A stretch of DNA of 62,945 bases, filler included, from Hyphochytrium catenoides (Eukaryota > Protista > Hyphochytriomycota), in assembly GCA_900088475.1 (NCBI GenBank). It is 9 parts of 9 records of this genome, joined end to end, with 100 filler letters (N's around TTAATTAATTAA, not from the genome) between each part and the next. Parts side by side here need not be neighbours in the genome. Positions count along the whole stretch, not along the records: positions 32,438 to 51,676 come from FLMG01002005.1; 8 more parts are not named here. One strand, 5' to 3'. Every line of letters begins with the position of its first letter. Position 1 is the first letter of the stretch. Shown one piece after another: positions 31,718-53,314 of the stretch. The notes below the pieces were generated by a model that was not told the origin of the DNA, did not search any database, and worked only from the letters and a program-made list of their open reading frames with translations. The translations under genes were made by a program, and so were the position numbers.

Positions 31718-32857
31718 AGAGAGAGAAAGAGTTCGGTGCAGTTGGATCAGGACCTTGCTGCTTTGCTAGGAGAAGTGTTCGCATCCTCTCTTCCTCCGGT
31801 CACCTCCGCGCTCCGGATGCTGTTTGCCTCTTCTGTGAATGAAGGCGGAGCTCCCTTCCTCTTCGTGGGCGAGAAAGACATCTTTTGCCTTCTTCTCTCT
31901 GTCTCTTTCTCTTTCTCTGCTTCCTCCCTCTTGATGAAAGGAGATTTGGCTGTCTAGCTTATTCTCTCCTTCCTCTCTCACCAATCTTCCCTCTCTCCTT
32001 GGTCTCTTTCTGTCTCTCTTTCTCTCTTGATGTTCAACTGTATCTGGTCCTGTTAGTGTATATAGTGGAGTCAGGAGAGGGATCAGAGAAGAGAAAGAGG
32101 CTTCTAATAGACTTTCGACGTAGCGAAAAGACGGTAGTCCCAGAAAGCGTTGATAGGGAAACGAGAACGTGATCAAGAGGAAAAGAGCGAGCGGGAGAGA
32201 GAGAGAGAAAGAGACACAGATAGATAGGTTGAATGGCAACCTCCTCCTGCAAGAAAGATGAGAGGAAGTAGGCCAGCCATCAGCCATCAAGTGAAAAGGG
32301 TGGTAAGACTCTCAGAAGTGCAGCATGAGAGGAGGAGNNNNNNNNNNNNNNNNNNNNNNNNNNNNNNNNNNNNNNNNNNNNTTAATTAATTAANNNNNNN
32401 NNNNNNNNNNNNNNNNNNNNNNNNNNNNNNNNNNNNNCTCTCTCACTCTCTCTCTCTCTCTCTCCCCCGTCCCCCCCTTCTCTTTCTCTCGCCCGCTCGC
32501 TCGCTCTCTAATTCTCTCTTTCTCACGCTCACTCTCGCGCTCTCTCTCTCTCGCTCGCTCGCTCTCTCTCTCCCATATGCACATGAATCTCTCTCTTTTT
32601 CTCGCTCTCCTCGCTCTCGTTCACTCTTTCAGTCTCTCTCTCTGTCTCTCCTTATACAAAAGCCTTTCTCTTCTCTCTCTCTCTCTGCCTTTGTCTCTTT
32701 TCTTTGTTCAGCTGGTGCATGCGCTGGCTCTGATGATGTTGCCTGACTGGTCTTTATCACTTGGAGACTCCTCCAATCATCGGACCGATGAGCTAATGCA
32801 CTTCTGCGGTCGTGAAGGTGAGGCCATCCCTTGACGACGGCTCTTGGGACTTGAGAA

Positions 32858-32906
<49 letters not shown>

Positions 32907-32929
32907 NNNNNNNNNNNNNNNNNNNNNNN

Positions 32930-32978
<49 letters not shown>

Positions 32979-33551
32979 TCTCTCTCTGTCTTCATGGGTT
33001 CCTCATCTCACCACCGACAAATCCATCCTCCATGGACAGTTTGGCTGCTTGATCTTATGCCTCCGGCTTTGCTCCTTTCCCAAGCTCCACATTCTGTCTC
33101 CTTTAGGCTTCCTCCTGATCTTCTCCAGTAACCGGGGGTGGGGGGAAGGTCTCCCTTCTCTTGCTCCCTCTCTCTCTCTTCTCTCTCTCTCTCTCTATGT
33201 AACGCATCTGGAGGATCCTTTTCCTCTTGGTTCCGTCCTTGCTGACGCTTGGCCGTAAAGCCCCTTTCTTCTTATGACAAGAAGAGAGAGAGAGACAAGA
33301 AGAGAGAGAGAGACAAAAAGAGAGAGAGAGAAAGAGAGAGAGTGAAGGAAGAAAGGACGAAGAGAAGCGGCAAGAAGAAGAGATTCATTTAAAGAGGAAG
33401 ACAAAAGAGACAGGGGAGAGAGATAATCTTTCCCTCCTCGTCACGCCTCCCTCTGCTCCATAAAAATAAACTCTTCGCTTACAAAAAAGTGATAACCCGC
33501 CGGCCTTGTTAGACGCTGGGCGTCCCTGTTGGCAGGACACCAAGAGAACTC

Positions 33552-33600
<49 letters not shown>

Positions 33601-34046
33601 TTCTGTCTCTCTCTGTCTCTCTCTCTCGCTCTCTCTCTCGCTCTCTCTCTCTCTTTCTTGGCATAGCTCTTCCCAATTTCTCTCCCTCCTAAGTTTCATT
33701 GATCGTGTTTCTTTCTCCTCTCTTCCGTTGCCGTCACTCACTATTCCCTCCCGGCGCGCTCTCTCCTTTTTTCCTTCTGTCTTCCTGGTGGCACATCCGC
33801 TGCGGCAAAGTCCTGCTGCGTGCTTCTGCGGCCCTCAGTGTTTCACCATCTGTTTCTAGCAGTCTCTCTTCTGTCTCTCGTCATCTGCTTTTCCTTTCGT
33901 TTTCTGCGTAGCACTTGCCTGTTGGTGCCTGTCCTTGTTGACTCTGTTGGACGGTTGACCGCAGTCGGCACTTGGAAGAAAGAAGCAAAGAAAGAGAGAG
34001 AGACCCAAAAGTAGTAAAGAAAGACCAGAGCCAAAAAGGGAAGACG

Positions 34047-35540
34047 ATGGCGTCACAGGCCAAGCCACAAGGTGCAGAGAGCCTCCCAGTGACTCACTTC
34101 ATTAACAAGCAGCTGCTCCACACCGACGTCTGGTACCGCTTCCAGTATGTCTCAGACTTTGTAGGCTTCACGAAGGAAGATTCAAAGTGCTTGATAGATA
34201 ATCTCTCTACCCTGGATTCTGTTATGAAGCCCGTGCTCGACCTTGTCTATCACAGGCTCTTCAGCTACGATGTGACCAGAGCTGTCTTTGTTGATCATCG
34301 CAATAGAATGGAGAAGAGAGGCTCTCAACAGCCGCAAGGAGGGCAGCAGCAGCAGCAGGATGACCTGTCAGCAGCAGCGGACGAGAACAGCAGCAGCAAT
34401 GAGTTTAGAGACGACGATCTGCAGCTGCGGAAAGACTTTCTGAAGACGTACTTTGTCAAGATTATCACGGGAGACATCGATCAGAGACTTGTCTACTTTA
34501 TGGACTGGATAGGGAGGCTGCATACTCCTGCTGGGATGGGAGGAAGACGGAAGAATAACGTTCCTGTCGAGTATATCCATATCAACGCGCTCTTTGGCTA
34601 CCTCCACGCCATCCTGACTGAGCACATCATGCTGGCCCCAGAGATGCAGGACAAGCCAGAGGAGATGCGGAAGGTTGTCTCTGCGCTGACGAAGATCCTG
34701 TGGATCCAGAACGATCTCTTCGCCAGACACTATGCCAAAGAAGAAGAAGAGTATCAAGAGCACGAGACGACCACGGCAGAGCTTTATCAAACTCTTAAGG
34801 ACAAAGGTGAGGTCCGAGAAGCTTTCACAGCGTACGTAGAGAAGCAACATTGCGCCGAGACCATGCGATACATAGAGCTCGTGCTCAAGTTTGACCTTGA
34901 GCAAAGTCCAGAGGGCCGTTCGAGCCTCAGCCGGCAGATAGTGCAGCAGCACGTACAGCAGGGTTCTCCGAACGAGGTGAACATCAGCTCTAAGATGCGG
35001 ATGCAGATGTTGCAGACAGTAGAGAAGGCTGGAGACCGTAGTGACTGCTGGAGGCCGTGCACAGAGGAAGTGTTGAACCTTCTTCTCCCTTCTTATCTGC
35101 AGTTTTTAAAGCACTTCAGTAGTGCTGGCCTCTCCTGTCCGATAGGAAAGAGAGGAAGCGAGAACCTGCGCAGAGGCTCAGCATCATCCTCGGTATCTCC
35201 GCCTCCTCTTCCCGACGCTGGCAGCCACCAACAACAACAGGCGACTGCCAATGTTGCTGGAGGAAGAGGAGCTGCTGCAACGTCATGTCCAGCAGCTAAT
35301 GATCACGTTGGCAGGAAAAGGAGTTCTACCAGGCCCGCACCCTTTACGGGCCTGCTAGGCAGGTGGAAGAACTCAACCTCCGAATGGCTGTCAAGCTTGA
35401 GCATCGGGGCGAGGAGAAAGAAGGTCTACAACGAAGGATCACATCAGACAGCCGGACCGTCACGCTGGCAGGGCGTGGCAGCGGAGTCTACCAGCAGGCC
35501 CTCAGACACAGCGGCAGGACCTCCGCTGTTCTCTGCGTAG
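34047..35540 (+). CDS. Intronless 497-aa protoglobin (sensor-globin)-RGS fusion protein
   Basis: Globin about 34090-34733: YRFQYVSDFVGFTKED, VYHRLFSYDVT, RKDFLKTY, MDWIGRLHT, VEYIHINALFGY, KILWIQNDLFARHY. RGS about 34779-35114: FTAYVEKQHCAETMRYI...SPNEVNIS...EEVLNLLLPSYLQFL. First in-frame ATG is 34047. Confidence 0.88.
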   Translation: MASQAKPQGAESLPVTHFINKQLLHTDVWYRFQYVSDFVGFTKEDSKCLIDNLSTLDSVMKPVLDLVYHRLFSYDVTRAVFVDHRNRMEKRGSQQPQGGQQQQQDDLSAAADENSSSNEFRDDDLQLRKDFLKTYFVKIITGDIDQRLVYFMDWIGRLHTPAGMGGRRKNNVPVEYIHINALFGYLHAILTEHIMLAPEMQDKPEEMRKVVSALTKILWIQNDLFARHYAKEEEEYQEHETTTAELYQTLKDKGEVREAFTAYVEKQHCAETMRYIELVLKFDLEQSPEGRSSLSRQIVQQHVQQGSPNEVNISSKMRMQMLQTVEKAGDRSDCWRPCTEEVLNLLLPSYLQFLKHFSSAGLSCPIGKRGSENLRRGSASSSVSPPPLPDAGSHQQQQATANVAGGRGAAATSCPAANDHVGRKRSSTRPAPFTGLLGRWKNSTSEWLSSLSIGARRKKVYNEGSHQTAGPSRWQGVAAESTSRPSDTAAGPPLFSA

Positions 35541-36401
35541 TAAAAGAGTGCTTTGCTCGACTCCTCCTCCTTGTTTAACCTGCTTGGTCCCTTGCTCCCG
35601 CATTAGCAGCAAAAGCATTTGGCGCCAATGCTGCTGCTAGCTCTACTGCCTGACTGCTCTTACTAATCTACGATCAGGAGCAGCAGCAAGAGTCGGAGAA
35701 GTCCCAATGATGAAAGCTTGAGAGCGGGGACAGGCTTGAGGCTTGCAGGGAGCTGCACGTGCATGCTCCACATCTAATTGTCACACAGGCAACAAAAATT
35801 GCCATGCAGCCAGAGGAAATAATATTGAGAGCAGTGGGCGTCGTAGTACCAAGATGAGCCCGGTCGTCCTGTTAATCCTTGTAGAATCAACGCAAGCTTA
35901 CTCCTTATTAACTGCAGGTCGTCCGGCCACCATCTACATATAGTCCTGCCTGCCCACTCTTCTGTGTTAGTGTTGCCACCTTTACGGGCTGATCATCCCC
36001 GCTCTCTCCTCCATTGCCCTCTTCTGCTGCTGTTGCTACAGCCTTCTGCTGTCCCACACTGTTCGGCGGCGGCGGGGCCATGCTGCTGCAGTGCTCTGGC
36101 CCGCCTGCTACCTCTTCTCTTCCCGTTAACCTCCCATGATATCTCTTCTTTCTTGCCTTTGTCTTCTTCCGGCTGCTGCTCCGCATTTTCCTCTTTTCCC
36201 CTCTCACAAGTTCAAGAAGACCGCTCTTCCTCTCGATCCCACCCTGCTGCCGGCGGCAATTCTGATGATTGTCCCGTCGTTGGAGAAGAGGTTCACGAAA
36301 GAAGGCTACGGGAGAGGGAAAGTGCTTGGGGTGGTCTGACTCTCTACTTCTTCTTAGGCTGGCGATGCTTTTCTTCTTTCTCATTCAATCTCTATAGCTC
36401 T

Positions 36402-36456
<55 letters not shown>

Positions 36457-39384
36457 ATTTTGGATGCAGTAGGCCATTATCATCTTCTTTCCTTTGACAG
36501 ACAAAGAGAAGGAGGAAGGAAGCCATCATCATCCACAACATGACTTCTCAGGACTGCCTCTTCAACAGGCACGGGCAATAAGAGCATAGTCTTGCGCCTG
36601 CTCCTTCCTGCGATCCTTCATCCACATTGATGATGGTTGGCAGCTACTCCGTTGGGGCTCCGCAAAAGAAAGTCTCCCCCGCGTTGTGGAGCGCCCTTCA
36701 TGCTGTCAACGGCTGCAGGTCTTTCCCTTCCTCTTGTACTGCAGCCAACGGCCTTTGCGATGCATTGAGAGTCGCCTTGCATGCAAGGGGTTTGGTGCGC
36801 CTGCCAGGAGGTCTGGAGAGGGGCCAAGAAGGCGGATCATCCACATGATGGCAGGCAGAATGATGGAGGCTGTTCCTCTCATCTATCTCATGCTGGCAGC
36901 TTTCCTCCCGTTGTGAATAGCCAGGAAGGCCGCTGAAGCTGACGACAGACAGTGAAATAGCTTGTCAAGGCGTCAAGAATGGTTCCCACAGCTGTCTATC
37001 CCACAGCCGTCCTGCCTAAAGACTAAAATAATATTGGCCGACATGAGTGACAATAGCGGCCGCGGCCGCATGGACCTACCGCTAACGACGACCATCATCT
37101 ACCTTTTGGTACCTGCCCTAATAATGACGCGAGTCCTGCAGACAACAAGCGGATCGCTGCTGCTTGCCCAATGATGTGTCTTCTTCTCCTAGTGGTTGAA
37201 GACGGTGATGGCTCTCGCTTTGTTGGGAGCCATCGCCCGGGCGACAGCTTTTGTTACTCTTACGCCACCACCGAAGAAGAGAGAAGATAGAAGCTGGACG
37301 ACTCACTTCATCATCTATTGCATCGTCCTGGCAGCAGCCCACCAGCAATCTTCGATCCTTCTTCCTCGTGCTCATTAGCCCTCCATATTATCCTTCTGTC
37401 ACTGTCCACCTTCTTCTGGACTAGTAATATATCGAGGGGCCGGGAGAAGTAGGCTACATGGCTGCTTGGGGAGCGAAAGGACAGACGCAGCTTCATCTTA
37501 CTTTATTCACTGCCTCGTGTCACTATTTTTTAAGTTGATAGCTACGAAGAGAAAACAAATCGTCCTGGAGAAGTAAAGCAAAAGCCTTGGTTGAAGAAGT
37601 GTCTACAAGGATGTTATCTTTTGGCCTGTGCTACTTCGACTAGGATGAAGATGAGCAGGGCAGCTGAGCTGATTGGCCTTGAAGATGAAGGAGGCGCCAC
37701 CACGACAGCAAGCATAATATTCATGGTACCCAGTCCTCCCTTCTTGGCGCCAAGCACTTATTGTCGGAGGAGAAGTGAAGTGAGCGGTGGCCGGTCGATC
37801 CATGCTTCTCCCTGACGTTAACTTCATCATTAAAGCGACATATGTTCTTCTTCTTCCTTGATTGAATAGATGACAACAGAGAACATATACACGGGAGGAG
37901 AGACATCGAGACGACACGCTGCCCACTGCGCGTGTACTACTAGCGATAGGTTGAGAATCTAGCAGGAGAAGCCTAGGACGGGACCGCTTCGCTCAAGCAT
38001 CGAGTGGCTCCATCCGAGAAGAAGAACGCACGTGCAGACTCCTAGTAGAGGAAGCCTAAATCATTCAGATGGACTCATCCTCCTAGGTTCTTCCCTTCTT
38101 TCCGACGCTTTGACGGCGGTACACTAAAGGCCTTTAGCAGTTAGTGAGCTGAGCAGCAGCAGGAGAGAGAAGGAGGATGCTCGCTGTCACAAGGCAGGCT
38201 CAGAAGAACTCCGTATGTTGCCTTTCTCACAGAACTAGAGAAGAGTAAGGGAAGGTGGGCAGCAGCCAGCTTCCGCCCATGCTGTTTGGCGTTACCAGCC
38301 TCCTGCACCCGGGCCGACCAGGCCCCGAAGAGCCCATCATCAAATCCCCATCCGGCTCGATGACTCTGTCTTCCAGTCCCTTTCCTCCTCCAGCAAGAAG
38401 CAGGGGCTCAGGCTCATCATTGCAGGTGAGCAGTAGGAACTTTCTCAAAGTAGACAATCTAATGAGCGAAGTTCACTATTCGTCAAGAAAGTGAGACAAG
38501 AAACCTCGCTAAGGAACCTCGCTTGGCCGCTGCCGCCTTGGACATCCATACCCGGTCTGTTGCATGGTGCCCACCATCACCAAGGAACCAATAAGCTTCC
38601 CCTTTCCTCAGCAAAACTGATAGCGTAGTAGCCCATCGTCCCAATGCTTGCCACCTTATAATCTTGATACATCTTCGGGTACGATCGCTCAACTCGCTCA
38701 ACAAGAAGGACGACATTGAAAGAACGACTGGGTGGACACTATGGGCGCGGGTACATTACGGCGTGGCTGGTTTGCCTGGAACATTCTCTAGAAGAGCAGC
38801 AGACTTTGGTCCAAGCCATAGACAATGCTCCCGCTAGTAGTGGGCAGAAAAGCTTTGAGAGTGGGAAGAAGCACCACAGTTTCTCCCAGCGAGCTTGTGC
38901 TGCTGCTGCTGCTCTGTTCGCCGCATGATGACATGGATGGGCAAACCTCGCATCACTGTTCGCCCGCTGCTCTCGGGCTATGTCCACGTTCAATCGATGA
39001 TGTCAGCAGCAGGAGGGCAGCAATAATCTCTATCCTATGAGGAAGTAATGATGATGGCTTCGGGAAGAGGATGTGCATGTTCATTCTTCTTCTTCTCCAC
39101 CTAGTCCAGACCAATTTCAAGAGGCAAGATCACCACCTGTTCTGCAGCAAGGAATGCATGCGCAGCAGTGAGAGCACGGACTAACTGAGCCGCGCGCAGG
39201 ATGCCGTCTTTCTCTGACTCTCATGCCAGTCACTCAGCGCTGATGGAAACGGGAGGAGGACAAGAGGAAGAAAAGAGAGAAGAGAAGAGAGCAGCTGCCT
39301 CAGAAAAAGATTCACCAAGAAGTTCATCATCCAGCCATCATCAGAAGTGAAACGAGACTGAAGATATGACGGCGAGAGAGAGAG

Positions 39385-39432
<48 letters not shown>

Positions 39433-41744
39433 AGAGAGAGAGAAAGAGAGAGAGAGAGAGGGAATGAGAGGGAGAGAGAGAGTCATAAAAGAGGAGAGAG
39501 AAGAGAAAGACAATGGAAAGATCCAACACAGGGAAGAAAGATTCTCTCCATTATTGGCTGCTCTTCCATCACCTCTTAACCTGCAACCCCCACTTCTCCT
39601 TCAATACGACATTCCTAGGAAACGCTCGTTGATAAGCCCCGGGTTAGAACAAGCTACAGAAAAGAATTGTGAAGCGCTGAAAGCCATCTGCTGACTTTAC
39701 CTACAAATCGCGGAAGACAGCAGAATACGAAAATCATAGGTTCACTGTCCGCACCCCATGGATTCATTATTAGGCATTATCGTCCCAGAGTTATATGATA
39801 GGGCAAACAGCTCCAGAAGCCGGCACCCAGCCGCCCTTGGCCGGTACATAGGATCCGAGAGAAGATGAGGCGGAGGAAGAAGAGACGGCAGTGGACAGGA
39901 GGAAGGAGAAGAGAGACGCCAGCAAGAGGTAAAGAAGACGGCGAACAGAGGCCAAAGTCCTCGGTGATGTCAGCGCCTGAGAGATCCTGCAGCGCAAGGA
40001 GAAGGAAGAAACAAGCAGCCAGAGCCCCCGCAACGGCCCTCCTTAGCCTTCCCTCTTCCCTCACGTGACGCCATGCATCAACAAGCGAGCAGTAGTGAGC
40101 CCATCACTCGCGGTACAATGCACTGATGAGGCTTGCTGGCTGGCGGGGGTGTGAGGAAGGGTGACCCGGGAAGAAAGAGGTACCCTGGTGGCGAGAACAG
40201 CCAGAAGTCTCTTGCAGGTGCTTCGCTTCTTGCCTCCTGTGCGATGCAACAGGTGCTAGCCTCACAGCAGCACGCGGCAGCGCGAGGCTAGGCAGAACGA
40301 CGGCAACTGATACTGAGGAAGAGCGGAACAGGAGAGGAGAGGGTAAGAAACGATGATGGAGAGAATGGAGTGCCGCGCCATAAGATCTCAATGACGTCCT
40401 CCTTTTTCTCTCTTTTCCCGCCCTCTCACGCTGTCTCTTTTCTCCTTTCTCCCTATGCCTGTGCCTTTCTTCTACATTGCCTTTCAGAGCTTGGACGAAC
40501 TCATCTTACTCATAGTCTTCTGAACAGGCTAAGCCACAGCCGGAGAGTAGTAGTGCTAGCCCTTGTCTTTCCAGTCCCTTTCTCCGAACCTTCTCTTAGT
40601 CCTTCCTTTTTCAGGGCTCTCTCCTCTCACTCTTATAGTCTAGGGATGATAGGGTGTACCTGGTCTCTCCACAGGCTTCTTTCTCTAGCTGTCCGTGTCC
40701 CTTAGCTGTCCTCTTTGGTCCTCCGGCTCACCAAGATCCAACATCGTGCTTCCTGATGACCAATAATGACGTAGGAGCTCGTCGTCCCTTTCCCTTCCTG
40801 CGTGACGTTTGCTAATAACTTCTGCCTAGGGAGAAGCAGGGATTAAGGTCACCACCATAGATCTAGGAACTGCGTACTCCCGGAGTTAACTAACTGAATG
40901 AGCGATCAGAACTGGTTCCGTATCTTTTCTCTTCCTCTGCTTCCCAGACAGATCTTACGTCTGTCCTCGCATCCTTCTCCCGACTGAGTACATTCTTCTA
41001 GAGGTCTCTGTCTGTCCACATATTCAGAAGCAGAGTCGTGCTTTGTGGCTTAGCACCTGCATGGAAAGAAGAAGAAGGGAGAAAAAATAGAAGAACTGAA
41101 GGACAAGAAAGAAAGATCGACCATCTCTTTGCTTTTCTGCTCTTTCTTTCTTCCTTGAGCTGGCCTTACGACCTGTCTGTGCTAGGATCCAGGGGACGGT
41201 TCTGTTAAGAGAGAGAGGGAAAGCGAAAGATCTCCAGCTCTTGCCAAGCGCCTACGTTTGTTGAACGTTAAGCTTAGAAGCGAGGCAAGGGTAGCTTTCT
41301 AGCGAGACTGGGAGTTCTTCGACGGCAAGGAGGAGGAGCTCCAACCTAAAGAGAAGAAAGAACTGGGAAAGAGAGAACTTCGTTGTTCTTCCGACTTTCA
41401 GGGAGGAGTTCTTCCTCTGTCCCTTGCACAGCCTGGCCCTGTTCTCTCTCTCGTTGAGAAACAGGCAGCGAACCCTGCCACCCCATCCCGGTGCCACCAT
41501 GACCACCATAAAAGAGAGAAAAAGTAGAGGATCTACCTTCCCGCATTCTCTTCCTCTGCAAAGCTCCTTTGCTGCCAGTCCTGCTGTTGGAGTTCTTCAG
41601 ACCATCGCACTTTCGATTTTGATCGCTATCCCAAAGATCGCTACCAGCCAGCAACCAAGCCAAATATTATCTTAAGAACTTCCAATCCAACACCCGCAGC
41701 AAGTCGAATAACCAGCTGAGTGCAGAGCCTGAACCTTCGTTGAC

Positions 41745-43754
41745 ATGGCAGGAGGAGACGTAAGTCAACAGCTCATTTGCCAAGCACAATGCCTCTTCAA
41801 TCATTTAGCATGTCTTCTTCCCCCTCCTGGCCTGCTCCTTCCTCCCGCGCCGCTTTCCACCGCATTATAGACTAACGCTCGCATCTGCTCCTAACCTCCT
41901 GATGAACAGAATCGCCGTGGTATGTCCGCCCACGAGGCCGGGAAAAAAGGTGCTTCTGCCCGCTGGGGCCGTGATTATACGAAGAACGACGAGGGTGCTC
42001 GGGGCACCATGAGCATGAGCGAGGCTGGGAGAAAAGGAGGCCAAGCCAGAGGAGGTGGAAGCCGCAGGAGCAGCGGCGGCGGAAGCGGCAACAGACGCGG
42101 CACCCGAAGCGCCACAGACCGTGATCCTGAGGAGGAGGAAGAGTACAGCATGGAGGACGAACTTTATGGCGGTGAAGATGACATCATCGACGTCCAGCGC
42201 GGCTACGTTGGAAAGGCCCGTGTCCCCTATCAAGGCCAGCAGAAGAAACAGTCTACGGGGAATCGTGGGCAAGACTTCATCGAGAATGATGATGAAGGCA
42301 GCGTGATGGACGAGGAGGAGATGTATGATGAAGACGACATTGCAGGCGAGGCGCAAGACCGAGAGAGCACTCCAGCCAAGAATCTCCGTCGGAACACCAG
42401 GAAGAACTATGACGAAGACGCAGAGGACGATGCAGACGAGTACATTCTTCAAGAGGCTGAAGACATTGAGGGCGCTGGCGGTCTCGCTCGTAGACAAGGT
42501 CAGGGCCAACAAAGAAGCAAGGGAGGCAAGTTCACTGCGCATGAGCTGGGCAAGATTGGAGCCTCAGCACGCTGGGGCCGAGACTACACGAAGAATGACG
42601 ATGGTGGAGATGGCCGAGGGCGTATAACCACCCATCAGATGGGTAAGAGAGGTGCATCAATCCGTGAAGGACGCGACTATGGAGAAGATGAGGACGAGGA
42701 GGAGGAGGAGCAGCAGCCTAGACGTCGTCAAGGGGGAGGAGGACGCCAGGGCAAAGGCATGAGCGCTCATGAGGCCGGGAAGATTGGGGCTTCTCGTCGA
42801 TGGGGCCGAGACTATACTCAGGATGATGAAGGCGATGAGGGTACTATGGACACTAGGACCGCTGGCAAGAAGGGCGCTTCTCGAAGGTGGGGCCTGAACT
42901 ACGATGAGGAGGACGCGGGTGAAGACCAGGAGGAGGAAGAGGAGGAGGAGCAGCCTCGTCGCCGCCAGGGAGGAGGAGGTGGTCGCCAAGGAGGAGGAGG
43001 CCGTCAACAGGGAGGCAGAGCCATGAGTGCACATGAAGCTGGGAAGATCGGAGCTTCTCGGCGTTGGGGACGTGACTATACCCAGGACGATGAAGGTGAT
43101 CGGGGCACCATGAGCATGAGTGAAGCAGGAAGGAAAGGTGGCCATGCAAGATTTGGCAGTGGAAAGAGAGGAGGTGCGATGCGCCGAGACCGCGACTATG
43201 ACGAAGAGGAGGAGGAAGAAGAAGAAGAGGAGCAACCTCGTCGCCGCCAAGGGGGAGGAGGCGGCCGCCAGGGAGGTCGAGGCATGAGCGCACATGAGGC
43301 TGGAAAAATTGGAGCGTCCCGCCGTTGGGGCCGTGACTATACGCAGGACGATGAAGGTGATCGGGGTACCATGAGCATGAGTGAGGCAGGAAGAAAAGGT
43401 GGCCAGGCAAGAGCTGGCAGAGGAAAGAGAGGAGGTGCATTCCGTAGAGACCGCGATTATGAAGAAGAGGAGGAAGATGAAGAAGAGGAGGAGCCCCAGC
43501 AGAGAAGCAGAGGCGGTGGTCGCAGTGGAATGAGCGCCCATGAAGCCGGAAAGAAGGGAGCTTCCGCTCGTTGGGGCCGTGAGTACACTCCAGACGAAGA
43601 AGGAGGCCGTAAAACGATGAGCATGAGTGAAGCCGGCAAGAGGGGAGGCAGAGTGCGTGGTGGCCGCAACCAGGGTGACGACAGACCAAGTAAGAAGCAA
43701 AGAGCTGAACAGTTCGATGAGGATCTTCGTGGACGCATCGCTGCTCAGCCTTAA
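41745..43754 (+). CDS. KGG/GsiB/LEA-group-1-like repeat hydrophilin, paralogue A; exons 41745-41759 and 41910-43754
   Basis: MAGGD|GTAAGT...CTAAC...CAG|NRRGMSAHEAGKKG, matching the start of paralogue B. About 12 motifs of the types MSAHEAGKxGASxRWGRDY and MSMSEAGRKGG, separated by poly-E/D and R/G/Q tracts. Confidence 0.85.
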
Positions 43755-45749
43755 GTTTTGCATGCTTTGCTACTTTTTTGCATTATAATGACTAATGATG
43801 GATTTTGATAGCTTTGTTTCCCTACCACTATCGATTGCCCGACGACCTTCCCGCGTCTGACTGTCTTGCTAACCTCAAAAGCTGCAGATTCTCTCCGTTG
43901 TGCCATGACTATCTTCTCTTCGTTAAGCTTCTCAATCATTAACACCTAGTTCTCCATGGACGGAAAGCGTCGGCTGAAGTATTCTCTTTGCCCTCTTCGT
44001 TCTGCTGGAGGCGATGTCAACAATCGTTGTCCCGGTTATTTCTTAGTGGAGGAAGAATGCTGAATGATGATTGTCTCTTGCTGCTCTTCCTACTCTTCTG
44101 ACAAAGTCAGATCGCAAGAAGCTGCAGGTGGTGCCATCTGCAATGCCGGCGTTCTCCTCATCATTGTTGCCTCATTCAGCTAGATTAAGGGGAAATCGAC
44201 CAAGAAGAAGATGGAAAAGCTGCTGTTACTACTTCTTAACTAGAAGGAAGGCTGGAAGTAGCTGGGTCTTGCTTCTCGACAACTAGGTTGACGGAGGAGG
44301 ACTCCGAACAAACCTCGGTCCCTAGGCTGCTGGTAGCTGCTGTCGTCATAACTCTGAGCAGGAGCTTGTATCTGATCTCTGCAGCAGCAGAAACGGAAGT
44401 ACACAAAGCAGCCTTGACAACACGACGTCATCATGAACGCGATATCATCAATGGAAGAGGACGAGGAGGAGAAGTGTTCCATAAGCCAACAAGAGGACCA
44501 GACGATGGACGGAAGTGGACAATTGTTGCTTTGCGGATCGTCAGATCATCTTGTGATTCCTTTCGAAATTGGCCTTGTGAGATCGCGGCTTTCTAAGATA
44601 AGGGGAGTTCCTATTAGTTCTATTATAAGCTGAGATGCTGGCGCCAAAGGGCAAGGAAGGATGTAAAGGCCGCTTGTCCATCAAGCTTTATTACCAAGAC
44701 ATCTCTCTCGCCTCGGACAGCGGTGTAGCGCTGGCTGACTGGGAGAAGGTGGTTAGTGTGCCTCAGCTTGTGGTCGTAAGACTAGCTGTCACCTACTATG
44801 TTTGCTTCTTCTTCCACGCCTTCCCGCCATCATCAGTGACTAGAAAGAACCGACACATCTTGCCTATCGAATCGGCCTACTATGACGTGCCGAACAAGAA
44901 ATATTTTAACTCGTCAGCACCATTATGCTATCTGTAGAACTAGTATCGGACCGGAGACCAGAGGAATGAGCTTACTCGCTGACCAGAGCACTCCTTTGCA
45001 TAGTGCCTCGCAGCGTCTCGCATCCTGATGAGGCCACCAGCCCAAAGGTCAGGCTTCGCTTTGAGGTGAGCTTCTTCTTATCATCTGAAAGACTGGTCGA
45101 AGAGGGAGGATTCACTCGCCGACACAAGAATGGATAGTAGAAGACCGCTTTGCCAGTACTCCTTAGTGGAGCGCGCCTCTAAGGTTGCTTAGCCAGTATT
45201 AGCGGATTGCCTACTACGGCGAGAAGGTAAGAGGAGAGGTTGCTCGACGAAGAAGCCCTGCGACAGCGCGTCTTCCCAATGGCTCTGTAGTTTATGAAGC
45301 CTTCTTTGGCTAATTAGCCCACTGCGATCGGTAGTAGGTGTCATGCCTGACGCTACATCCTTCCCGCGCTTATAACTAGTTGCCACCTTCTCTCATTAGT
45401 CATTACGTCCCTTGTGGCTTGGTCTCAAGGGTCATGAGGCTTTCTAATGCATATACAGAGGGAGGATTGAAGAGGAGAACAAGGATCAAGTTCTAGGAAG
45501 TCTGTCACCGCTACGAACTGCTGCTGGTGAGAGGTGACACTGATGTCAGCCTTTCTCTAGGGCCTCTTCAACCGCTGACGTAAGACATATTCCTTTATTA
45601 AGCACCTTCGCCACCTTGACAATGTCCCTTGAAGGCCCTTCCTCGCTGAGCCTCCTTCCTTGTCTAGAAAAGTAGTTCTTAGGTGTAGCAACAGGGCCCC
45701 TCCTTCATCGCCTGGCTGCTTGTCGCTCCGGCTACAAGGTGGTGGCAAG

Positions 45750-46098
45750 AGGTATGGGTGATGATGATGCTGCTGCTGGTGGTGCTGCTTCTGTATAGTG
45801 CTGCCTACCCCTGCTGCTGATGCTGGTGCACGGCTTCTCTGTCGTGCAGCCTATCCTATCCCTCCTGCTGCTGGTGGTGCTGGAGATGATGCTGGTGGTG
45901 CTCCTCCTAGCTCCTGCCTGTTAGCCTGGTAGGTGCTGCCCGCTGCCGCTTGCAAGCAAGTGCTACCACTGCTTGCTGCTGGTGGCTGGGCTGGAGCAAG
46001 CTAGGAGGACGATGGCAACCTGTTGCTTTGCTAGCTGCTTGCTGGTGGTGGCGCCTCCGCTCTTCTGATCGCTCGCTGTTTCCATGCAAAGAAGACAA
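45750..46098 (-). pseudogene. Possible decayed Gln/His-rich coding-like tract
   Basis: Reads ...GRS*EEHHQHHLQHHQQQEG*DRLHDREAVHQHQQQG*AAL; three in-frame TAG codons among CAG/CAC runs. Confidence 0.3.
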
Positions 46099-47623
46099 AC
46101 ACTATGATAGCCGCTAACGGCCGGCTATAGTGCCCAGGACGTCGTCCGCTGTGTGGCGTTGTGTCCTGTTCTCCCTCCGAACAACCGGTGTAGACGCACA
46201 ACAAGACCACCCATCCCCCATTAATATCACCAGAATAGATCTATCCCACACGCCTTATGGAGTGTACGAAAGATCGCTGTAGAAGAAAAGGAGAAAGGAT
46301 TTTGTAACGGATGATGGGCCAAACCAGGGCGATGACAGGCTCAGGGCGCCGCGAAACGCAGCTGCGCGGTGCACTAGCAGCAGAGGTAACATCGATTCAA
46401 TGAGAGAGTGAGCACATAAGCAGCTCGTAGAATGAGAGAAGCAGCAGCAGCAGCAGCAATGGAGAGGGACGATGGCCAGCAGAGATAGAGAGAAGAAGAT
46501 AATTGAGGAGGGAGGAGGAGAACAAAGACTTTTCTGCTGATGATGACGGGATGCAACAGTTCTGAGGAAAGATGAGTAAGGAGAAGGGGAAGATAAGGGT
46601 GATGGAGTAAAGGATTGGGGGAAAGGAAGCTCTAGGTTTTGGTCAAGGGAGAAAGAAGCAGGCAGACATCTCCACACTTCCTCCTCAAAGGGAGAAAGCC
46701 AATTGTCCAAATGGTCTAAACGGCTAGGGATACTAGGCCCTGGGTAGCACTGTTCCCCAAATAGCAGATGGAAGAAAGAAGGGAAGATGCAGGGCAACTC
46801 TTGGCAAGGCCTCCTTTCTTGTCCTTCTTTCCCTTTCCTGATGCCCGGGACAGCTGGTATCCCTCTTTCATTGAAACCTTGGGTCCTGCAGACAGCAGCT
46901 TCCTGACATTCTGGATTAGAGGAGAAAGCAGTTGAGTTCATAAAAGTCTTCTGGTTCTTTATAAACTTTACACTTTTGGGGTGATAGCTGCGTACGTACT
47001 CAAGAGAGGAGAGAAGGTGAAGACGTACTCCAATAGCGACCGTAAGCACGAACACAAAGCTTCCTACTCCTCGTCAAAGATCTTGGTCCTTGATTCTTTC
47101 TTCCCTCTTGCTCTTGCTTCTTTCTACAAGTAGGCTTAGCCTATCCTTACCCTTGAAAGTTAAATGTATGGCATTCTAAGTAAGACCCTAAGCTTTTCCT
47201 CATCTAAACTTTGGCCCTTTGGAGCTGAAGTTGCTTCCTTGGTCTCTACCTGAAGGACGAGACCACTGCTGGTTGGACAGACATGCAGGGAGATCAAGGC
47301 AGAACGAAGAAAGAACTTTGATGTTCTTTCCTCCTCATCGTGCTCTCGCTGTTCTGTCTCTAACTGTTAGGAAGTAGTAGTTAGAGCTTAGTCATAAAAG
47401 AACTCATAAAAAACGAGGCGGACTCGTACTGAAAAAGTTCCCTACTAGTAGCGTCAGCACAAAAGCGAAGATCTTCGAGCTGTAGGTCCTCATCTTCCTC
47501 GTCATTCAGAAGCTCTCTGTGACTGCCACTTTTCATTTTGAACCCTGCAAAGCACCAACAACGTAGCATTTTTGAAGAAAGCAGCGCCAAGGCAGCGCAG
47601 CAAGCATCTGTGGTACAGAAACC

Positions 47624-47631
47624 TATTATAA
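47624..47631 (+). promoter_or_regulatory. TATA-like element upstream of paralogue B
   Basis: TATTATAA about 30 bp before the ATG at 47657 in an otherwise GC-balanced context. Confidence 0.25.
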
Positions 47632-47656
47632 GAGGCAGTAGACAGCTCTAAGAACC

Positions 47657-49456
47657 ATGGGAGCTGGAGACAATCGTCGCGGTATGTCCGCCCATGATGC
47701 AGGAAAGAAGGGCGCCTCCAGAAGATGGGGCAAGAACTACTATGAGGAGGATGAGGATGACTACGACGAGGAGGAGGAAGAGCAGCAGCCTCAACGCCGC
47801 CGCCAAAGTGGTGGTGGCCGTCAAGGCGGAGGCAGACCTATGAGCGCCCACGAAGCAGGTAAGAGAGGAGCTTCTGCGCGCTGGGGTCGTAACTATCTTG
47901 AAGACGACGATGAGGGAGACCACGGTACGATGGACATGAGCGAGGCGGGAAGAAGAGGAGGCCAATCTAGAGGAGGACAGTCTAGGGGTGGCAGTCGCGG
48001 TGGAGGAAGCGGCGGCCAGCGCCGAGGCATGAGCCAGCATGATGCAGGCAAGAAAGGAGCATCCATCCGTTGGGGCCGTAACTATATGGACGAAGACGAG
48101 GAGGATGACTACGAAGAGGAGGAGGAGGAGCAGCCACGCGGCCGGCGCGGCGGAGGCCAACAGCGGCGCGGAATGAGCCAGAGTCAAGCCGGCAAGAAAG
48201 GTGCTTCCGCTCGGTTTGGACGTAACTATATGGACGAAGAAGAGGAGGAAGACGAAGAAGAGGAAGAGCAACCCCGACGACGTCAGGGTGGAGGAGGTCG
48301 TCAAGGTGGAAGGGGTATCACAGCCCATGAGGCAGGACTTCGTGGAGCTTCGGCCCGGTGGGGGCGTGACTATACCCAGGATGATGAGGGTGATCCTGGC
48401 ACCATGACCATGAGCGAAGCTGGCAGAAAAGGAGGGCAAGCACGGGGTGGCAGCCGTGGAGGAGGCGGAGGAGGGGGAGGTCAACGCCGAGGAATGAGCC
48501 AGCACGAAGCCGGCAAAAAGGGCGCGTCAGCCCGCTGGGGTCGCAACTACATGGACGAGGACGAAGAAGAGGATTATGAGGAAGAAGAAGAGCCACGAGG
48601 ACGCCGGGGAGGTGGCCAGCAGCGCCGCGGAATGAGCCAGAGTCAAGCAGGCAAAAAGGGTGCTTCTGCCCGATTGGGAAGGAACTACATGGATGAGGAG
48701 GAGGACGAAGAGGAAGACGAAGAGGAACCTCCTCGTCGTCGACAGAGTGGTGGCGGGCGCCAAGGTGGTCGAGGTATTACGGCACACGAGGCCGGCAAGC
48801 GAGGAGCATCTGCGCGTTGGGGCCGTGACTATACTCAGGACGATGACGGCGATCGGGGTACCATGACCATGAGTGAGGCTGGCCGAAAAGGAGGGCAAGC
48901 AAGGGGTGGCTCCCGGGGAGGAGGAGGCAGCAGCGGCCAGAAGAGAGGCGGGATGAGCCGTCAGGAGGCCGGAAGGAAGGGAGCTGCAGCTCGATGGGGT
49001 CGTGAATACTCTGAAGAGGAAGAAGAGGAGCAGCCCCAGCAGAGACCCACAAAGAAGCAGAGGAGCTCTTTCACGCCAAACAAGAGAATTCCAATGGTCA
49101 ACGAGGAAAACCGTGAGCTGTACAACGCCATCCGTGAGCTTCAGGAGTATGAGTTCAGGAACAATAATAAGGTTGAAGGTGCCATGTGTGCCGCGGTAAG
49201 TCCCTTCAACTAGCCCTTTCCCCTACATCCCCGAGCCCTGAATGACTCACATTACCTTACTCTTTCTTTTCCGGTCCTATGTTCTGAACAGCTCGGTAAA
49301 ATCATCAGAGAAATGGATACTCCAATCGAGTCTATTGATGACTTAGCTGAGGTGCCCAACCTCCCTCCTACAGCTTTGAAGCACATTGAAGAGTTTATGG
49401 AGACGGGTACAATTAACAAGACGGAAATTCTCCGGCAGATTGCGGCTCAGCCCTAG
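47657..49456 (+). CDS. KGG/GsiB-like repeat hydrophilin, paralogue B, with a C-terminal Pol X/Pol beta N-terminal-type helix-hairpin-helix domain; exons 47657-49195 and 49292-49456
   Basis: Twelve repeats. GCG|GTAAGT donor at 49196, CAG acceptor ending 49291, phase 0. Spliced tail NRELYNAIRELQEYEFRNNNKVEGAMCAA|LGKIIREMDTPIESIDDLAEVPNLPPTALKHIEEFMETGTINKTEILRQIAAQP*, ending in the same IAAQP* as paralogue A. Confidence 0.85.
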
Positions 49457-50380
49457 ACAGCTAGCTTCACCTCTAATAGGGCGAGTCCCATAACAGGACA
49501 GCAAATGAACAGTTTTGTCTAATCCTACCAACTTCGTCTGCAAGCGCTGCCTTTTCTAAACCATGCTCATGAGCCTTTTGCTGATTGTTCTTTATTGAAC
49601 TCCCAAGCAAGCAGTCTGGGGAACGCCGCTTGTCCAGCTCGGAAGAGCTTCCAGAGTTCATGACCCTTAGCGCAAAGGCAAAGACGTACCTTCGATCCTA
49701 GACTACGTAGAAGTAGTTGAGCTGACTTCGACCACTAGGATGGCCCCGCCAGCAACTCGTTCCTGCGAGACGTATCAGTCACTCCACTACATACATTTCT
49801 ATTATAAGTAGAAGAGGCATGGGGAGAGTTGTTGGCACCCTTTACTCTGCACGTTGATCAACAGGTCAACGGCGAGAGGAGCAGCAGCCCTTCCAACGTG
49901 TTTCTGGAAAGAAAAGCGCTCGTATGATGATAGGTACGGTAGAGAGAAAGCAATAGAGGACAAACAACTGCAGGTCTCTGAGACACCAACAAGATGAGAC
50001 GGTGAGACCAAAGGGATAAGATTGTAAGACCAGGATGAAGATCCAAAGATGCTTATAAAAAAGGGAACAACAGTAATGAACAACCAAAATTTAAGCAGGA
50101 CAAAGCGAGGAGAAGCAGAAGAGGAGAGAGTAAGAACTACGACTACCTGGGAAATAGAGTACTAGCTATCACCTCCCTCTACTATCTCTTCCTTCTCTCT
50201 TTTTCCGTTTCCTCATCGCTGTCGTCGGTATGACTACTCTGTCTTCTTCAATACTTCGTCCTTGTCACTTATCCTCCCGTTCCCTTCCTGCACTGCCAAG
50301 TCACCACGTCGGCATGCACCAACGGACGATGCTGACGTTTGTCCTTGATGGTCAACTGAGCGACTGCTTGAGCGGAGGCG

Positions 50381-50540
50381 AAGGATGCTGAGAAGGATGC
50401 TAAGGAAGGATGCTGAGGAAGATGCTGGAGGAGGATGCTAAGCAAGGATGCTGAGGATGATGCTTCCTAAGCAAAGATGCTGAGGAGAATGCTAAGCAAG
50501 GATGCGGAGGAGGATGCTAAGCAAGGATGCGGAGGAGGAC
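50381..50540. repeat. Degenerate minisatellite, GGATGC(T) core, alternating 12-13 bp units
   Basis: (GAGGATGCTAAGCAAGGATGCTGAG)-like units repeated. Confidence 0.8.
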
Positions 50541-51107
50541 GAAGAAGAAGAGATAAACAGAGCGGAAGCGGATGATGGAGCGTTAGACTGTAACGGCCCC
50601 GTTTCTTTCCTGTTTTCTACCCTTCAGTCAAAATTTCCCACAGTCCAAATGACAGTCAGATGGGTAGGGTACGTTCTGGTAAGAAACAGTATCTGTCACG
50701 CATAATACCTTTATGTAAACTGGATAACTTCCCCTTCACTTCGTCAGGTACCTCTTCGGGTGGTCCAGTCTGTGGGAGGCCAGGGTACTGTTTAACTGAA
50801 CGAAATGTCCGATCCCACAAGACAGGTAGCTCTTGACCAATATTAAGAAACAGTGTAACCCCCACCAGATTTCCTAATAATCAGGGTTTTGCTAGTTTCC
50901 TCTCCAAACTCTATGGTCTACCATAGATGTCAGGCCTCATAAAGAGATAAAATGTGCATTCCGCCGCAATATCCTACTTTTTATTCTTCTGTGACCTTAG
51001 GGAAAAGTCCTTAGTCTAAGATATGCCTAGACATTGGAATAAACTCCGGTTCAGACAGTTGTTGTCATTGGACATTCATCACTCTCTTTCTCTTCCTTTC
51101 TTTTTCG

Positions 51108-51159
<52 letters not shown>

Positions 51160-53314
51160 NNNNNNNNNNNNNNNNNNNNNNNNNNNNNNNNNNNNNNNNN
51201 NNNNNNNNNNCTCTTTCTCTCTCTCTTTCTCTCTCTCTCTCGCTCTCTCTCTCGCTCTCTCTCTCTTTCTCTCTCTCTCTCGCTCTCTCTCTCGCTCTCT
51301 CTCTCTTTCTCTTTCTCTTTCTCTCTCGCTGTTTCTCCCACACTCTCTCTCCTTTCTGATCTCCAGCTTGGTACATCTGCAATGCGAAGCCTCGCCTTAC
51401 ACTCTCCCATCAGGTCCCCATCCAAGAGAGAAGAAAGGAAACAATGTGAAGCCATTCATTCCTCTATGAACAACTCTCGCCGCTGTGCTTGCTGCTTTCA
51501 GCACCAACCGTAAGAAACCCAACAGAAGACAATGCTTGGGGAAAAACGGTTCGGAGCCACTCTTCCTCATGGAGTCGCCGTTCCTAGGTGCTGGCCGGCA
51601 AGCACAGCTAGCCAGAGGAGAGGGAGAAAGCAGAGCGGTGAAGCTTTTGGTCCTTCAAGGACCGACAGCCATTGAGNNNNNNNNNNNNNNNNNNNNNNNN
51701 NNNNNNNNNNNNNNNNNNNNTTAATTAATTAANNNNNNNNNNNNNNNNNNNNNNNNNNNNNNNNNNNNNNNNNNNNATGGAGACGACGAGGCTGCCATCC
51801 TGACACCTCCTTCTCTCTCCCACCGGCGTAGGGCAATAACTATTATGGAAACTGAGGATATTATTAGCTGAAGGTTGTTGTTATTAGCCGGAAGAAGAAT
51901 GATTGCAGGCCGACGACATTAAACGCCGATGTACTAGATTATTATAGGAAGGAGGCAAGGAGAGCAAACCTACTTGGCTTGTACTAGGGACGGCCGGGAG
52001 AAAGGGCAGTCTACTGCCAGGTCTACGGGCTTCCCAACAACAAGGCAGCCTGTTTTTTAATAGGGCCAGCAGAGGAGGGTAAGATATCCGGTGTGAATGA
52101 GAGACTGTGACGCAGATATCCCCTAGTGGTGGAGAGGAAGAGAGGCTACATTGAGAAGGACAAGAACAGACAGACGAAAGAAGAAGACTGCCGTTTTATG
52201 AGTGAGTTGTCCGATGATTCTACGTGGAGGCAGACTACAGCTAGATGATGTTGCGCAGCAGGAGGCGCATCATCTTCATTGCCAAGAAGCCAGCTGCTGC
52301 TGCTTATCGATGGGTGCCGCTGCTCAATCACAAGCAGCGCCTGATCGCTAATAAAGCGAAGAGGCAGTCCATCAGAAGATGTGGACTAGGCTCTACAAGC
52401 TCGTCCCCTAACCATCTCAATCGCCGCAGAGCATAAGCGATCAATCCTCTAGAAGGTAAGTTAGCCTTTGATAAGTGGCGAGAGGCTACCTGTCAACGGT
52501 GGCTGTCGTGAATGCAATGTTCTCCTTTTTGGACCCACGCCAAAGATATTACCGAGATTTGTCTAGATAGTAGATATAGAGGAAAAGGTGTCGGCGAGCT
52601 GTCACAGCGCTGGTCTTAGCACAAGATGAGGTCAATCAAGTCAGCCGCACGAGCGGCGAAGAAGAAGCGGTTGCGGCGGTAGCATATGCGGCAGGCAGTA
52701 AACGTTCAATCCAGAGGCACGCAAGGCTCTCCATCTCTATGAAGCTGGAGGCTGCTATCTCCTGCTGGTATTTACCTGATTATTGCTCCTGCACTTCTCA
52801 GTCACCTCTTTGATCAGCACCACCTGCTGACTATTATGAAGACCTCCAATGATTGTTGAGCGACTGAGCTCTTCGAAGACTGACTCCCAATTTGTCAAAC
52901 AACAGCTCGAAGGGCCTCCTATAGCCTCCATAAAGATCATGCGCGGCAGCGGGGCGGCACTGCTGATGCAGCAATAGGAGGCAAGCTGGAGCAGCAGCAG
53001 CCTGGCAGGAGGAGGACGGACAATGACGACGAAGAAATAAAGCCAGCAGCAGCGGGCCAAATCCTTGTGTTTGGGCCACTTGAAGTCTTGAACTCTTAGT
53101 CCCGAAAAGAAAGACACTCGTGCGCCTTGAAAGTTCTAATACAAAGATACGGGTTACGGTGTGAGATAAATGGAAACAAATGAATCCTTCAAAGGTACGG
53201 TCAAAGTTTAGCAGCTTCTGGGGGTGGCTTGGGGGGACGAAGACTAATATAAGAGTTGATTCCTCGATGATCTGTCAGCTGAGCCTCTGGCTACCCCAAG
53301 AAGCGCCATCCCAA

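Follow-up and report, generated by a model that had tools for sequence, protein, structure and literature searches.

The window, by which I mean the whole stretch of DNA that was analysed (62,945 nucleotides, filler included), comes from assembly GCA_900088475.1 of Hyphochytrium catenoides, and its part at 32438-51676 (FLMG01002005.1) carries a gene in which a globin of the gas-sensing type is followed directly by an RGS box, which is the module for turning off the alpha subunits of G proteins. The RGS box is not known outside eukaryotes. This part of the window is about 51% G+C and looks eukaryotic, and long open reading frames (ORFs) are few within it. One of them stays open on the + strand from 33972 to 35540, and from its first in-frame ATG at 34047 it gives a product of 497 amino acids (aa). 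The earlier note on this DNA, made from the letters of the sequence, had described here one uninterrupted ORF joining a globin to an RGS box; the description holds over 34047-35540, and the ORF is likewise continuous in independent DNA contigs. The gene is real and intact, and its product is a soluble two-domain signalling protein with an N-terminal sensor globin, about 12 acidic residues, an RGS box and a tail that is probably disordered (Table 1).

I take 34047 as the start because it is the first in-frame ATG, because the N-termini of homologues fall at the equivalent position in a 45-sequence alignment, and because the variation upstream resembles that of non-coding DNA. At 33864-33915, upstream of the ORF, a dense cluster of heterozygous single-nucleotide polymorphisms is accompanied by a 3-nt indel, which suggests that the DNA there does not code. 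An antisense ORF at 34368-34952 was dismissed as a mere shadow of the coding frame on the other strand.

The globin half (aa 31-235) matches the Pfam family Protoglobin (PF11563) at E 5.9e-30; its 104.8 bits lie well above the cut-off of 25, and the match runs over positions 4-158 of the 158 in the profile. The motifs by which the earlier note had recognised it lie where they had been placed, with VEYIHINALFGY beginning at aa 174 and WIQNDLFARHY at aa 219, and the same is true of the linker AKEEEEYQEHETTT and of EVNIS in the RGS box; DLVYHRLF was located from aa 65 and WIGRLHT from aa 154. The proximal histidine that the note had proposed in DWIGRLHT at 34521 is His159, whose codon occupies 34521-34523. 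In an alignment of the query with 44 relatives, H159 and Y68 are each at least 90% conserved and Q221 is invariant, and the eight sequences closest to the query share 38 invariant columns, that of H159 included. When aligned through the family profile to the protoglobin of M. acetivorans (MaPgb), H159 corresponds to His120 (F8), Y68 to Tyr61 (B10) and L132 to position 93 (E11). A pairwise alignment places H159 opposite the second His of the GHAH stretch of GsGCS (2w31), a residue that I take to be the proximal haem ligand of that protein.

More distant comparisons agree. A phmmer search of sequences in the Protein Data Bank (PDB) with the globin part finds the Geobacter globin 2w31 (E 0.002), and a profile of 45 homologues matches the M. 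acetivorans protoglobin, 2w31, HemAT and AfGcHK. The AlphaFold2 model, built on the 45-sequence alignment, has a predicted local distance difference test score (pLDDT) mostly above 90 in the globin, except in a Gln/Ser-rich insertion. When this model was compared with the PDB by Foldseek, the top 34 matches were all sensor globins or protoglobins (probability 1.00); the globins of AfGcHK, MaPgb, GsGCS, HemAT, DosC and BpeGReg gave target template-modelling (TM) scores of 0.67-0.89 at only 9-19% sequence identity. By alignment and by model, then, the globin half is a genuine sensor-type globin of the 3-on-3 fold, and its predicted haem ligand is in place. One further residue of the pocket is R128, which is nearly invariant in the globin family and aligns to protoglobin position E7, a Val in MaPgb. 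A charged residue at E7 is unusual in a distal pocket, and it may contact the haem propionates or the ligand.

The second half (aa 249-352) matches RGS (PF00615) at E 4.4e-10 over profile positions 5-107 of 117, and its 40.4 bits exceed the cut-off of 23.9, so both of the domains recognised in the earlier note lie above their curated cut-offs. A phmmer search of PDB sequences with the RGS part by itself gives RGS2 (E 5.5e-6) as the best match, followed by RGS7 (E 0.017), RGS16 and RGS4, and its nearest clusters in the ESM Atlas are RGS clusters. The box retains the FxxFLxxE, EVNI and SYxxFL motifs, and NEVNIS stands at aa 309-314. The assignment comes solely from these sequence profiles, and they are clear.

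How much of a GTPase-activating protein (GAP) is left in this box can be judged from the residues that RGS4 uses on G-alpha (Glu87, Asn88, Asn128, Asp163, Ser164 and Arg167), among which Asn128 is the catalytic helper and the residue most tied to GAP function. Equivalences were taken from alignments to RGS2, to the RGS2 mutant C106S/N184D/E191K (2v4z) and to RGS7, which are mutually consistent. I assume here that Cys106, Asn184 and Glu191 of RGS2 correspond to Ser85, Asp163 and Lys170 of RGS4, and the RGS4 numbering is assumed in the same way. On these alignments the equivalent of Asn128 is retained, yet part of the predicted contact surface for G-alpha has diverged (Table 1).

The two domains lie close together. 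In the full-length model the H helix of the globin ends at residue 227 and the next helix begins at 233, and the stretch between globin helix H and the RGS box's first helix is only about 12 residues long. The C-terminal tail is probably disordered, to judge from its composition, its lack of a Pfam match, and its mostly non-synonymous differences together with an in-frame 3-nt indel at 35229.

Two runs that bear this organism's label have Logan contigs at 34084-35301 (X1) and at 33916-35301 (X2), and both cross the globin/RGS junction. So does a 251-base contig (X4) from an unrelated metagenome run, which covers 34642-34892, and a contig from a soil metagenome (X5) matches 34192-34339. Within the gene there are no contig joints or loose ends. 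The runs carrying the stretch, which are present as contigs, were read as DNA, a label that is itself a guess. The join between globin and RGS box is not an artefact of assembly.

The same contigs show how the gene varies between strains or alleles. All three indels inside the ORF are multiples of three, two of them (+CAG at 34368, -3 nt at 34388) in the Gln/Ser-rich insertion, whose length varies in frame, and one in the tail (-3 nt at 35229), whereas indels outside the ORF are of 1 or 4 nt. The tallies of substitutions are small and cover the listed substitutions, with seven further differences not among them. By these tallies the globin part up to aa 230 has four synonymous changes (L24, R147, L214 and A230) and no replacement, the linker one synonymous change (T241T) and the RGS core another (V311V). 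Three replacements (E245D, G254P and E255D) fall at aa 245-255, in the linker and the opening residues of the RGS box, and in the C-terminal tail replacements predominate. This pattern fits purifying selection on both folded parts and loose constraint on the disordered tail. In run X1, paired alternative contigs at about half depth (around 200 against 408) occur at 33864-33915, 35272-35400 and 35453-35457, and they indicate a heterozygous diploid or two-haplotype source. The coding parts for globin and RGS box are free of such half-depth bubbles in that run.

Does any other organism possess this protein? An exhaustive phmmer scan of 1.84 billion (1.84e9) representative proteins at E<=0.001 returned 290 relatives, the best 150 of which all align to the globin only; a relative with both domains would score in both halves and rank high. 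Among the matches listed, 18 are of at least 320 aa. Pfam scans of 17 of them found cNMP-binding, B56-fragment, MoeA and truncated-globin partners and never an RGS box, and in the remaining one (P0023, 327 aa) the globin lies at 130-315 and leaves too little room for a C-terminal RGS box. A word-based search with the whole protein gave only a 285-aa globin of Naegleria, and such searches with the RGS region in its protein context and with the RGS part alone gave no match. Exact look-ups of the protein and of one neighbouring protein returned no record. The ESM Atlas clusters that were matched, among those of at least 50 members, contain protoglobin or RGS, none both. A first scan of metagenomes returned no locus; a later scan with a closer alignment returned 80 loci encoding globin relatives, none of which has an RGS match by tblastn (0/80), with a median extension past the globin of 5.5 aa. 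A search of the literature found no publication that combines protoglobin with RGS, or an RGS-globin architecture with heterotrimeric G proteins. The architecture, which the author of the earlier note did not know to have been described, was not met with elsewhere in very large protein collections or in the literature searched, and the globin-RGS fusion is so far unique to this organism within these databases.

The nearest globins, at 34-44% identity, come from Chytridiales, Entophlyctis and Chytriomyces (chytrids), Sorochytrium (a blastocladiomycete), Allomyces, Coemansia, Basidiobolus, Rhizopus, Naegleria, Physarum and Cyanophora. In the maximum-likelihood tree the query groups loosely with chytrid and Coemansia rows (85/96), and no strongly supported clade contains it. 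A census of fungal globins describes sensor globins only as single-domain proteins, some with unidentified extensions (PMC3287990). In the simplest history, a eukaryotic single-domain sensor globin acquired an RGS box.

Other eukaryotic protoglobin fusions, little known, appeared in the phmmer scan. They include Protoglobin with cNMP-binding (P0054), Protoglobin with a B56 fragment (P0087), MoeA with Protoglobin in the chytrid Entophlyctis (P0006) and truncated globin with Protoglobin in Basidiobolus (P0015), and a Cyanophora protein of 2207 aa has four protoglobin domains (P0002). Many single-domain relatives have about 20 hydrophobic residues at the C-terminus, as though anchored to a membrane by their tail (P0001, P0009, P0017, P0032, P0046, P0053, P0071 and P0079), and the position of this tail is occupied by the RGS box in the H. 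catenoides protein.

Comparison with known systems places the protein between two fields. With an N-terminal globin and an output domain in one ORF, it has the layout of a globin-coupled sensor (GCS). The bacterial proteins of this kind (HemAT-Bs, EcDosC, BpeGReg, AfGcHK and GsGCS) likewise have an N-terminal globin with His F8 and Tyr B10, followed by the output. Their described outputs are methyl-accepting chemotaxis protein, diguanylate cyclase, histidine kinase and STAS domains, often behind a middle domain (PMC7033309, PMC4976288), whereas the RGS box falls outside these classes and stands behind a linker of about 12 residues. HemAC of Leishmania and the O2-sensing adenylate cyclases of trypanosomatids are likewise eukaryotic sensor globins that control a nucleotide-signalling output (PMC7719234; reference 19 of PMC7033309). 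The output of HemAC, however, is an adenylate cyclase that makes cAMP, and the presumed output here would lie one level higher, on the GTPase cycle of G-alpha; among the matches listed, HemAC-type proteins are absent from the closest globin relatives.

The single-domain sensor globins of fungi (PMC3287990), Naegleria and Physarum come closest to the globin half, with 34-44% identity and shared conserved motifs. They differ in being about 190-290 aa long without a recognised output domain, often with only a hydrophobic tail, and none has an RGS box. Proteins in which an RGS box is fused to a seven-transmembrane (7TM) domain, such as plant AtRGS1 and the fungal GprK type, also join the box directly with a sensor, which would let a signal work through the GAP and not through a guanine nucleotide exchange factor. 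Their sensor is embedded in the membrane, whereas that of the H. catenoides protein is a soluble N-terminal domain of the haem type. Human neuroglobin resembles the present proposal in that the redox state of a globin iron controls heterotrimeric G-alpha-i/o, but it is an F-lineage 3/3 globin with one domain, has no RGS box, and binds GDP-bound G-alpha itself in the role of guanine nucleotide dissociation inhibitor and not in that of a GAP (PMC4842972).

What, then, would a globin do in front of an RGS box? The protein is best read as a GCS whose output is new and specific to eukaryotes; it may equally be called an RGS protein whose sensor input is new. In globin-coupled sensors the signal from the haem ligand runs through the G and H helices and the linker to the output, usually in a dimer (PMC7033309). 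In the H. catenoides protein, haem would be ligated by H159, and O2, NO, CO or the redox state of the iron would be read with the help of Y68 (B10). The resulting shift of the G and H helices, probably at a globin dimer interface, would be transmitted through the short linker and would alter the access of the RGS box to GTP-bound G-alpha, and in this way how long the G-alpha signal lasts would depend on gas or redox status. I give a probability of about 0.5 to such coupling, that is, to the haem ligand or redox state of the globin modulating the action of the RGS box on G-alpha. More tentative is the wider proposal that here, for the first time, a haem-based gas sensor could act straight on the heterotrimeric G-protein cycle, as a GCS invented in eukaryotes in which O2, NO, CO or redox state sets the GAP activity of its own RGS box and so controls the termination of G-alpha signals independently of a receptor. 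I infer haem binding, GAP activity, coupling between the domains, expression and a G-alpha partner.

Coupling is supported by the scores of both domains above their Pfam cut-offs, by the match of the globin model to known gas sensors, and by the conservation of H159 and Y68. It is supported also by the retention of E271, N312, S349 and K355 in the RGS box, by the short linker, the contigs that cross the junction, the frame-keeping indels and the synonymous pattern of change. Finally, there is the precedent of sensor globins with varied outputs, a eukaryotic adenylate cyclase among them (PMC7033309 and its reference 19; PMC7719234).

Several observations weigh against it. Three positions of G-alpha contact are unlike those of canonical GAPs, with Thr272 in place of Asn88, Pro348 in place of Asp163 and Gln352 in place of Arg167. 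The fold was confirmed for the globin; the RGS region is predicted to be all-helical, but its pLDDT is 40-60 within the full model, built with the globin alignment, and 44 when it is modelled by itself from a single sequence, no RGS alignment being behind either. The Foldseek search with the RGS model was non-significant, with RGS16, RGS8 and RGS2 first at E about 1 and TM 0.2. I was unable to find a G-alpha gene on the 19-kb piece 32438-51676, to which that search was confined. None of the runs listed is of RNA, so that expression and a joined transcript remain inferred. No orthologue of the fusion was found in the proteins, the Atlas or the metagenome loci, and conservation of the architecture across species is thus not demonstrable. 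In the maximum-likelihood tree the query globin sits on a long branch (1.84). Coupling would still be a reasonable functional claim, weakened somewhat by the substituted contacts, by the absence of RNA among the listed runs and by a search for G-alpha that covers only one piece of the genome.

The substituted contacts lead to a different explanation, which I consider somewhat unlikely. The RGS box might serve for binding or targeting and not as a GAP, as is the case for RGS-homology domains in GRKs, axin, sorting nexins and AKAP10; it would then place a globin with a chemistry of its own (NO dioxygenation, O2 buffering or redox) beside G-alpha or another partner, or let that partner regulate the globin. 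The best matches of the box are true GAPs of the R4/R7 class (RGS2, RGS7, RGS16 and RGS4) and not the axin, GRK or SNX types, and the equivalents of Asn128 and Glu87 are retained, but the Pfam score of 40 bits is modest, and the profile match ends at 107 of 117, which leaves the last helix weak or missing. The same explanation gains from the globin relatives, most of which are single-domain proteins without an output, many with a hydrophobic tail. It gains also from human neuroglobin, which acts on G-alpha without GAP activity (PMC4842972).

A young fusion restricted to this lineage, with its halves uncoupled and the domains independent or idle, or a gene that is not expressed, is quite unlikely. 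Against such a history stand the intact frame of 1.5 kb, the frame-keeping indels in two strains or alleles and the mainly synonymous changes in the folded parts, together with the key functional residues retained in both domains and a linker as short as in working sensor-output fusions. It is nevertheless what might be expected from the failure of the searches made to find an orthologue with the same architecture, from the absence of RNA among the listed runs and from the long branch of the globin, and the poly-Gln insertion and the 138-aa low-complexity tail suggest that parts of the gene are under loose constraint. That neighbouring genes were misjoined, or that the contig is chimeric, is hardly credible: the assembly is fragmented, with N gaps in nearby microsatellites, but contigs X1, X2 and X4 each run across the junction, where none of them is joined or ends loosely, and 34047-35540 is free of stops, frameshifts and Ns.

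The features of the gene are collected in Table 1.

Table 1. Features of the globin-RGS gene of Hyphochytrium catenoides, in positions of the window, and residues equivalent to RGS4 positions.
Feature	Positions	Strand	Residues and basis
Complete coding sequence	34047..35540	+	497 aa plus stop; no stop, frameshift or N inside (ORF listing)
Protoglobin / sensor-globin domain	34137..34751	+	aa 31-235; Pfam PF11563
Tyr68, putative distal Tyr (B10)	34248..34250	+	conservation and alignment to MaPgb Tyr61
Gln/Ser-rich insertion in globin	34326..34409	+	about aa 94-121; gap in all homologues; low pLDDT
His159, predicted proximal haem ligand (F8)	34521..34523	+	conservation and alignment to MaPgb His120
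Acidic linker AKEEEEYQEHETTT	34734..34775	+	aa 230-243, between globin helix H and RGS box
RGS box	34791..35102	+	aa 249-352; Pfam PF00615
Cys269-Ala270-Glu271-Thr272 loop	34851..34862	+	equivalent to RGS4 Ser85-Glu86-Glu87-Asn88; aligned to RGS2 and 2v4z
Asn312 of EVNIS	34980..34982	+	equivalent to RGS4 Asn128; aligns with Asn of EINID (RGS2) and AINLD (RGS7)
Ser/Ala/Gly/Pro/Arg-rich C-terminal tail	35124..35537	+	aa 360-497 (138 aa), low complexity; no Pfam match
RGS4 Ser85 equivalent			Cys269; as in RGS2 (Cys106)
RGS4 Glu87 equivalent			Glu271; kept
RGS4 Asn88 equivalent			Thr272; replaced
RGS4 Asn128 equivalent			Asn312; kept
RGS4 Asp163 equivalent			Pro348; replaced
RGS4 Ser164 equivalent			Ser349; kept
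RGS4 Arg167 equivalent			Gln352; replaced
RGS4 Lys170 equivalent			Lys355; kept

The surroundings of the gene are sparse. All three long ORFs of 32438-51676 lie on the + strand, separated by gaps of 4-6 kb without recognisable genes, and Rfam and tRNA scans of the same piece gave no match. Long (CT)n/(GA)n microsatellites, several broken by short runs of N, occupy 32438-33750, 36400-36500, 39180-39520 and 51020-51470. On the + strand, pyrimidines abound upstream of each ORF of that strand, and purines within these ORFs. The other two ORFs, at 41922-43754 (+, 610 aa) and 47657-49213 (+, 518 aa), are paralogues (BLASTP E 2e-39) without any Pfam match even at E 10, and they consist of repeats of about 40 residues (MSAHEAGKKGASARWGRDYT...MSMSEAGRKGG) spaced by poly-Glu and Arg/Gly/Gln stretches. 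The repeat recalls what I take to be the KGG motif of the GsiB, Con-10 and group-1 late embryogenesis abundant (LEA) stress proteins.

Globin-coupled sensors drive chemotaxis transducers, the synthesis of c-di-GMP and cAMP, kinases and stressosomes, and nearly all of them are bacterial, whereas RGS proteins are controlled by DEP, PX, 7TM and kinase modules. With a haem globin directly ahead of an RGS box, the two fields would meet. If the coupling between its domains is not real, the H. catenoides protein is still a clean case of lineage-specific domain shuffling onto the single-domain sensor globins that are widespread in eukaryotes. If it is real, O2, NO or redox state would have a soluble, receptor-free route by which to shorten or prolong G-protein signals, and in a protein as compact as this one, of about 360 aa without its tail, the allostery of an RGS box could be followed through a cofactor that is readable by spectroscopy.

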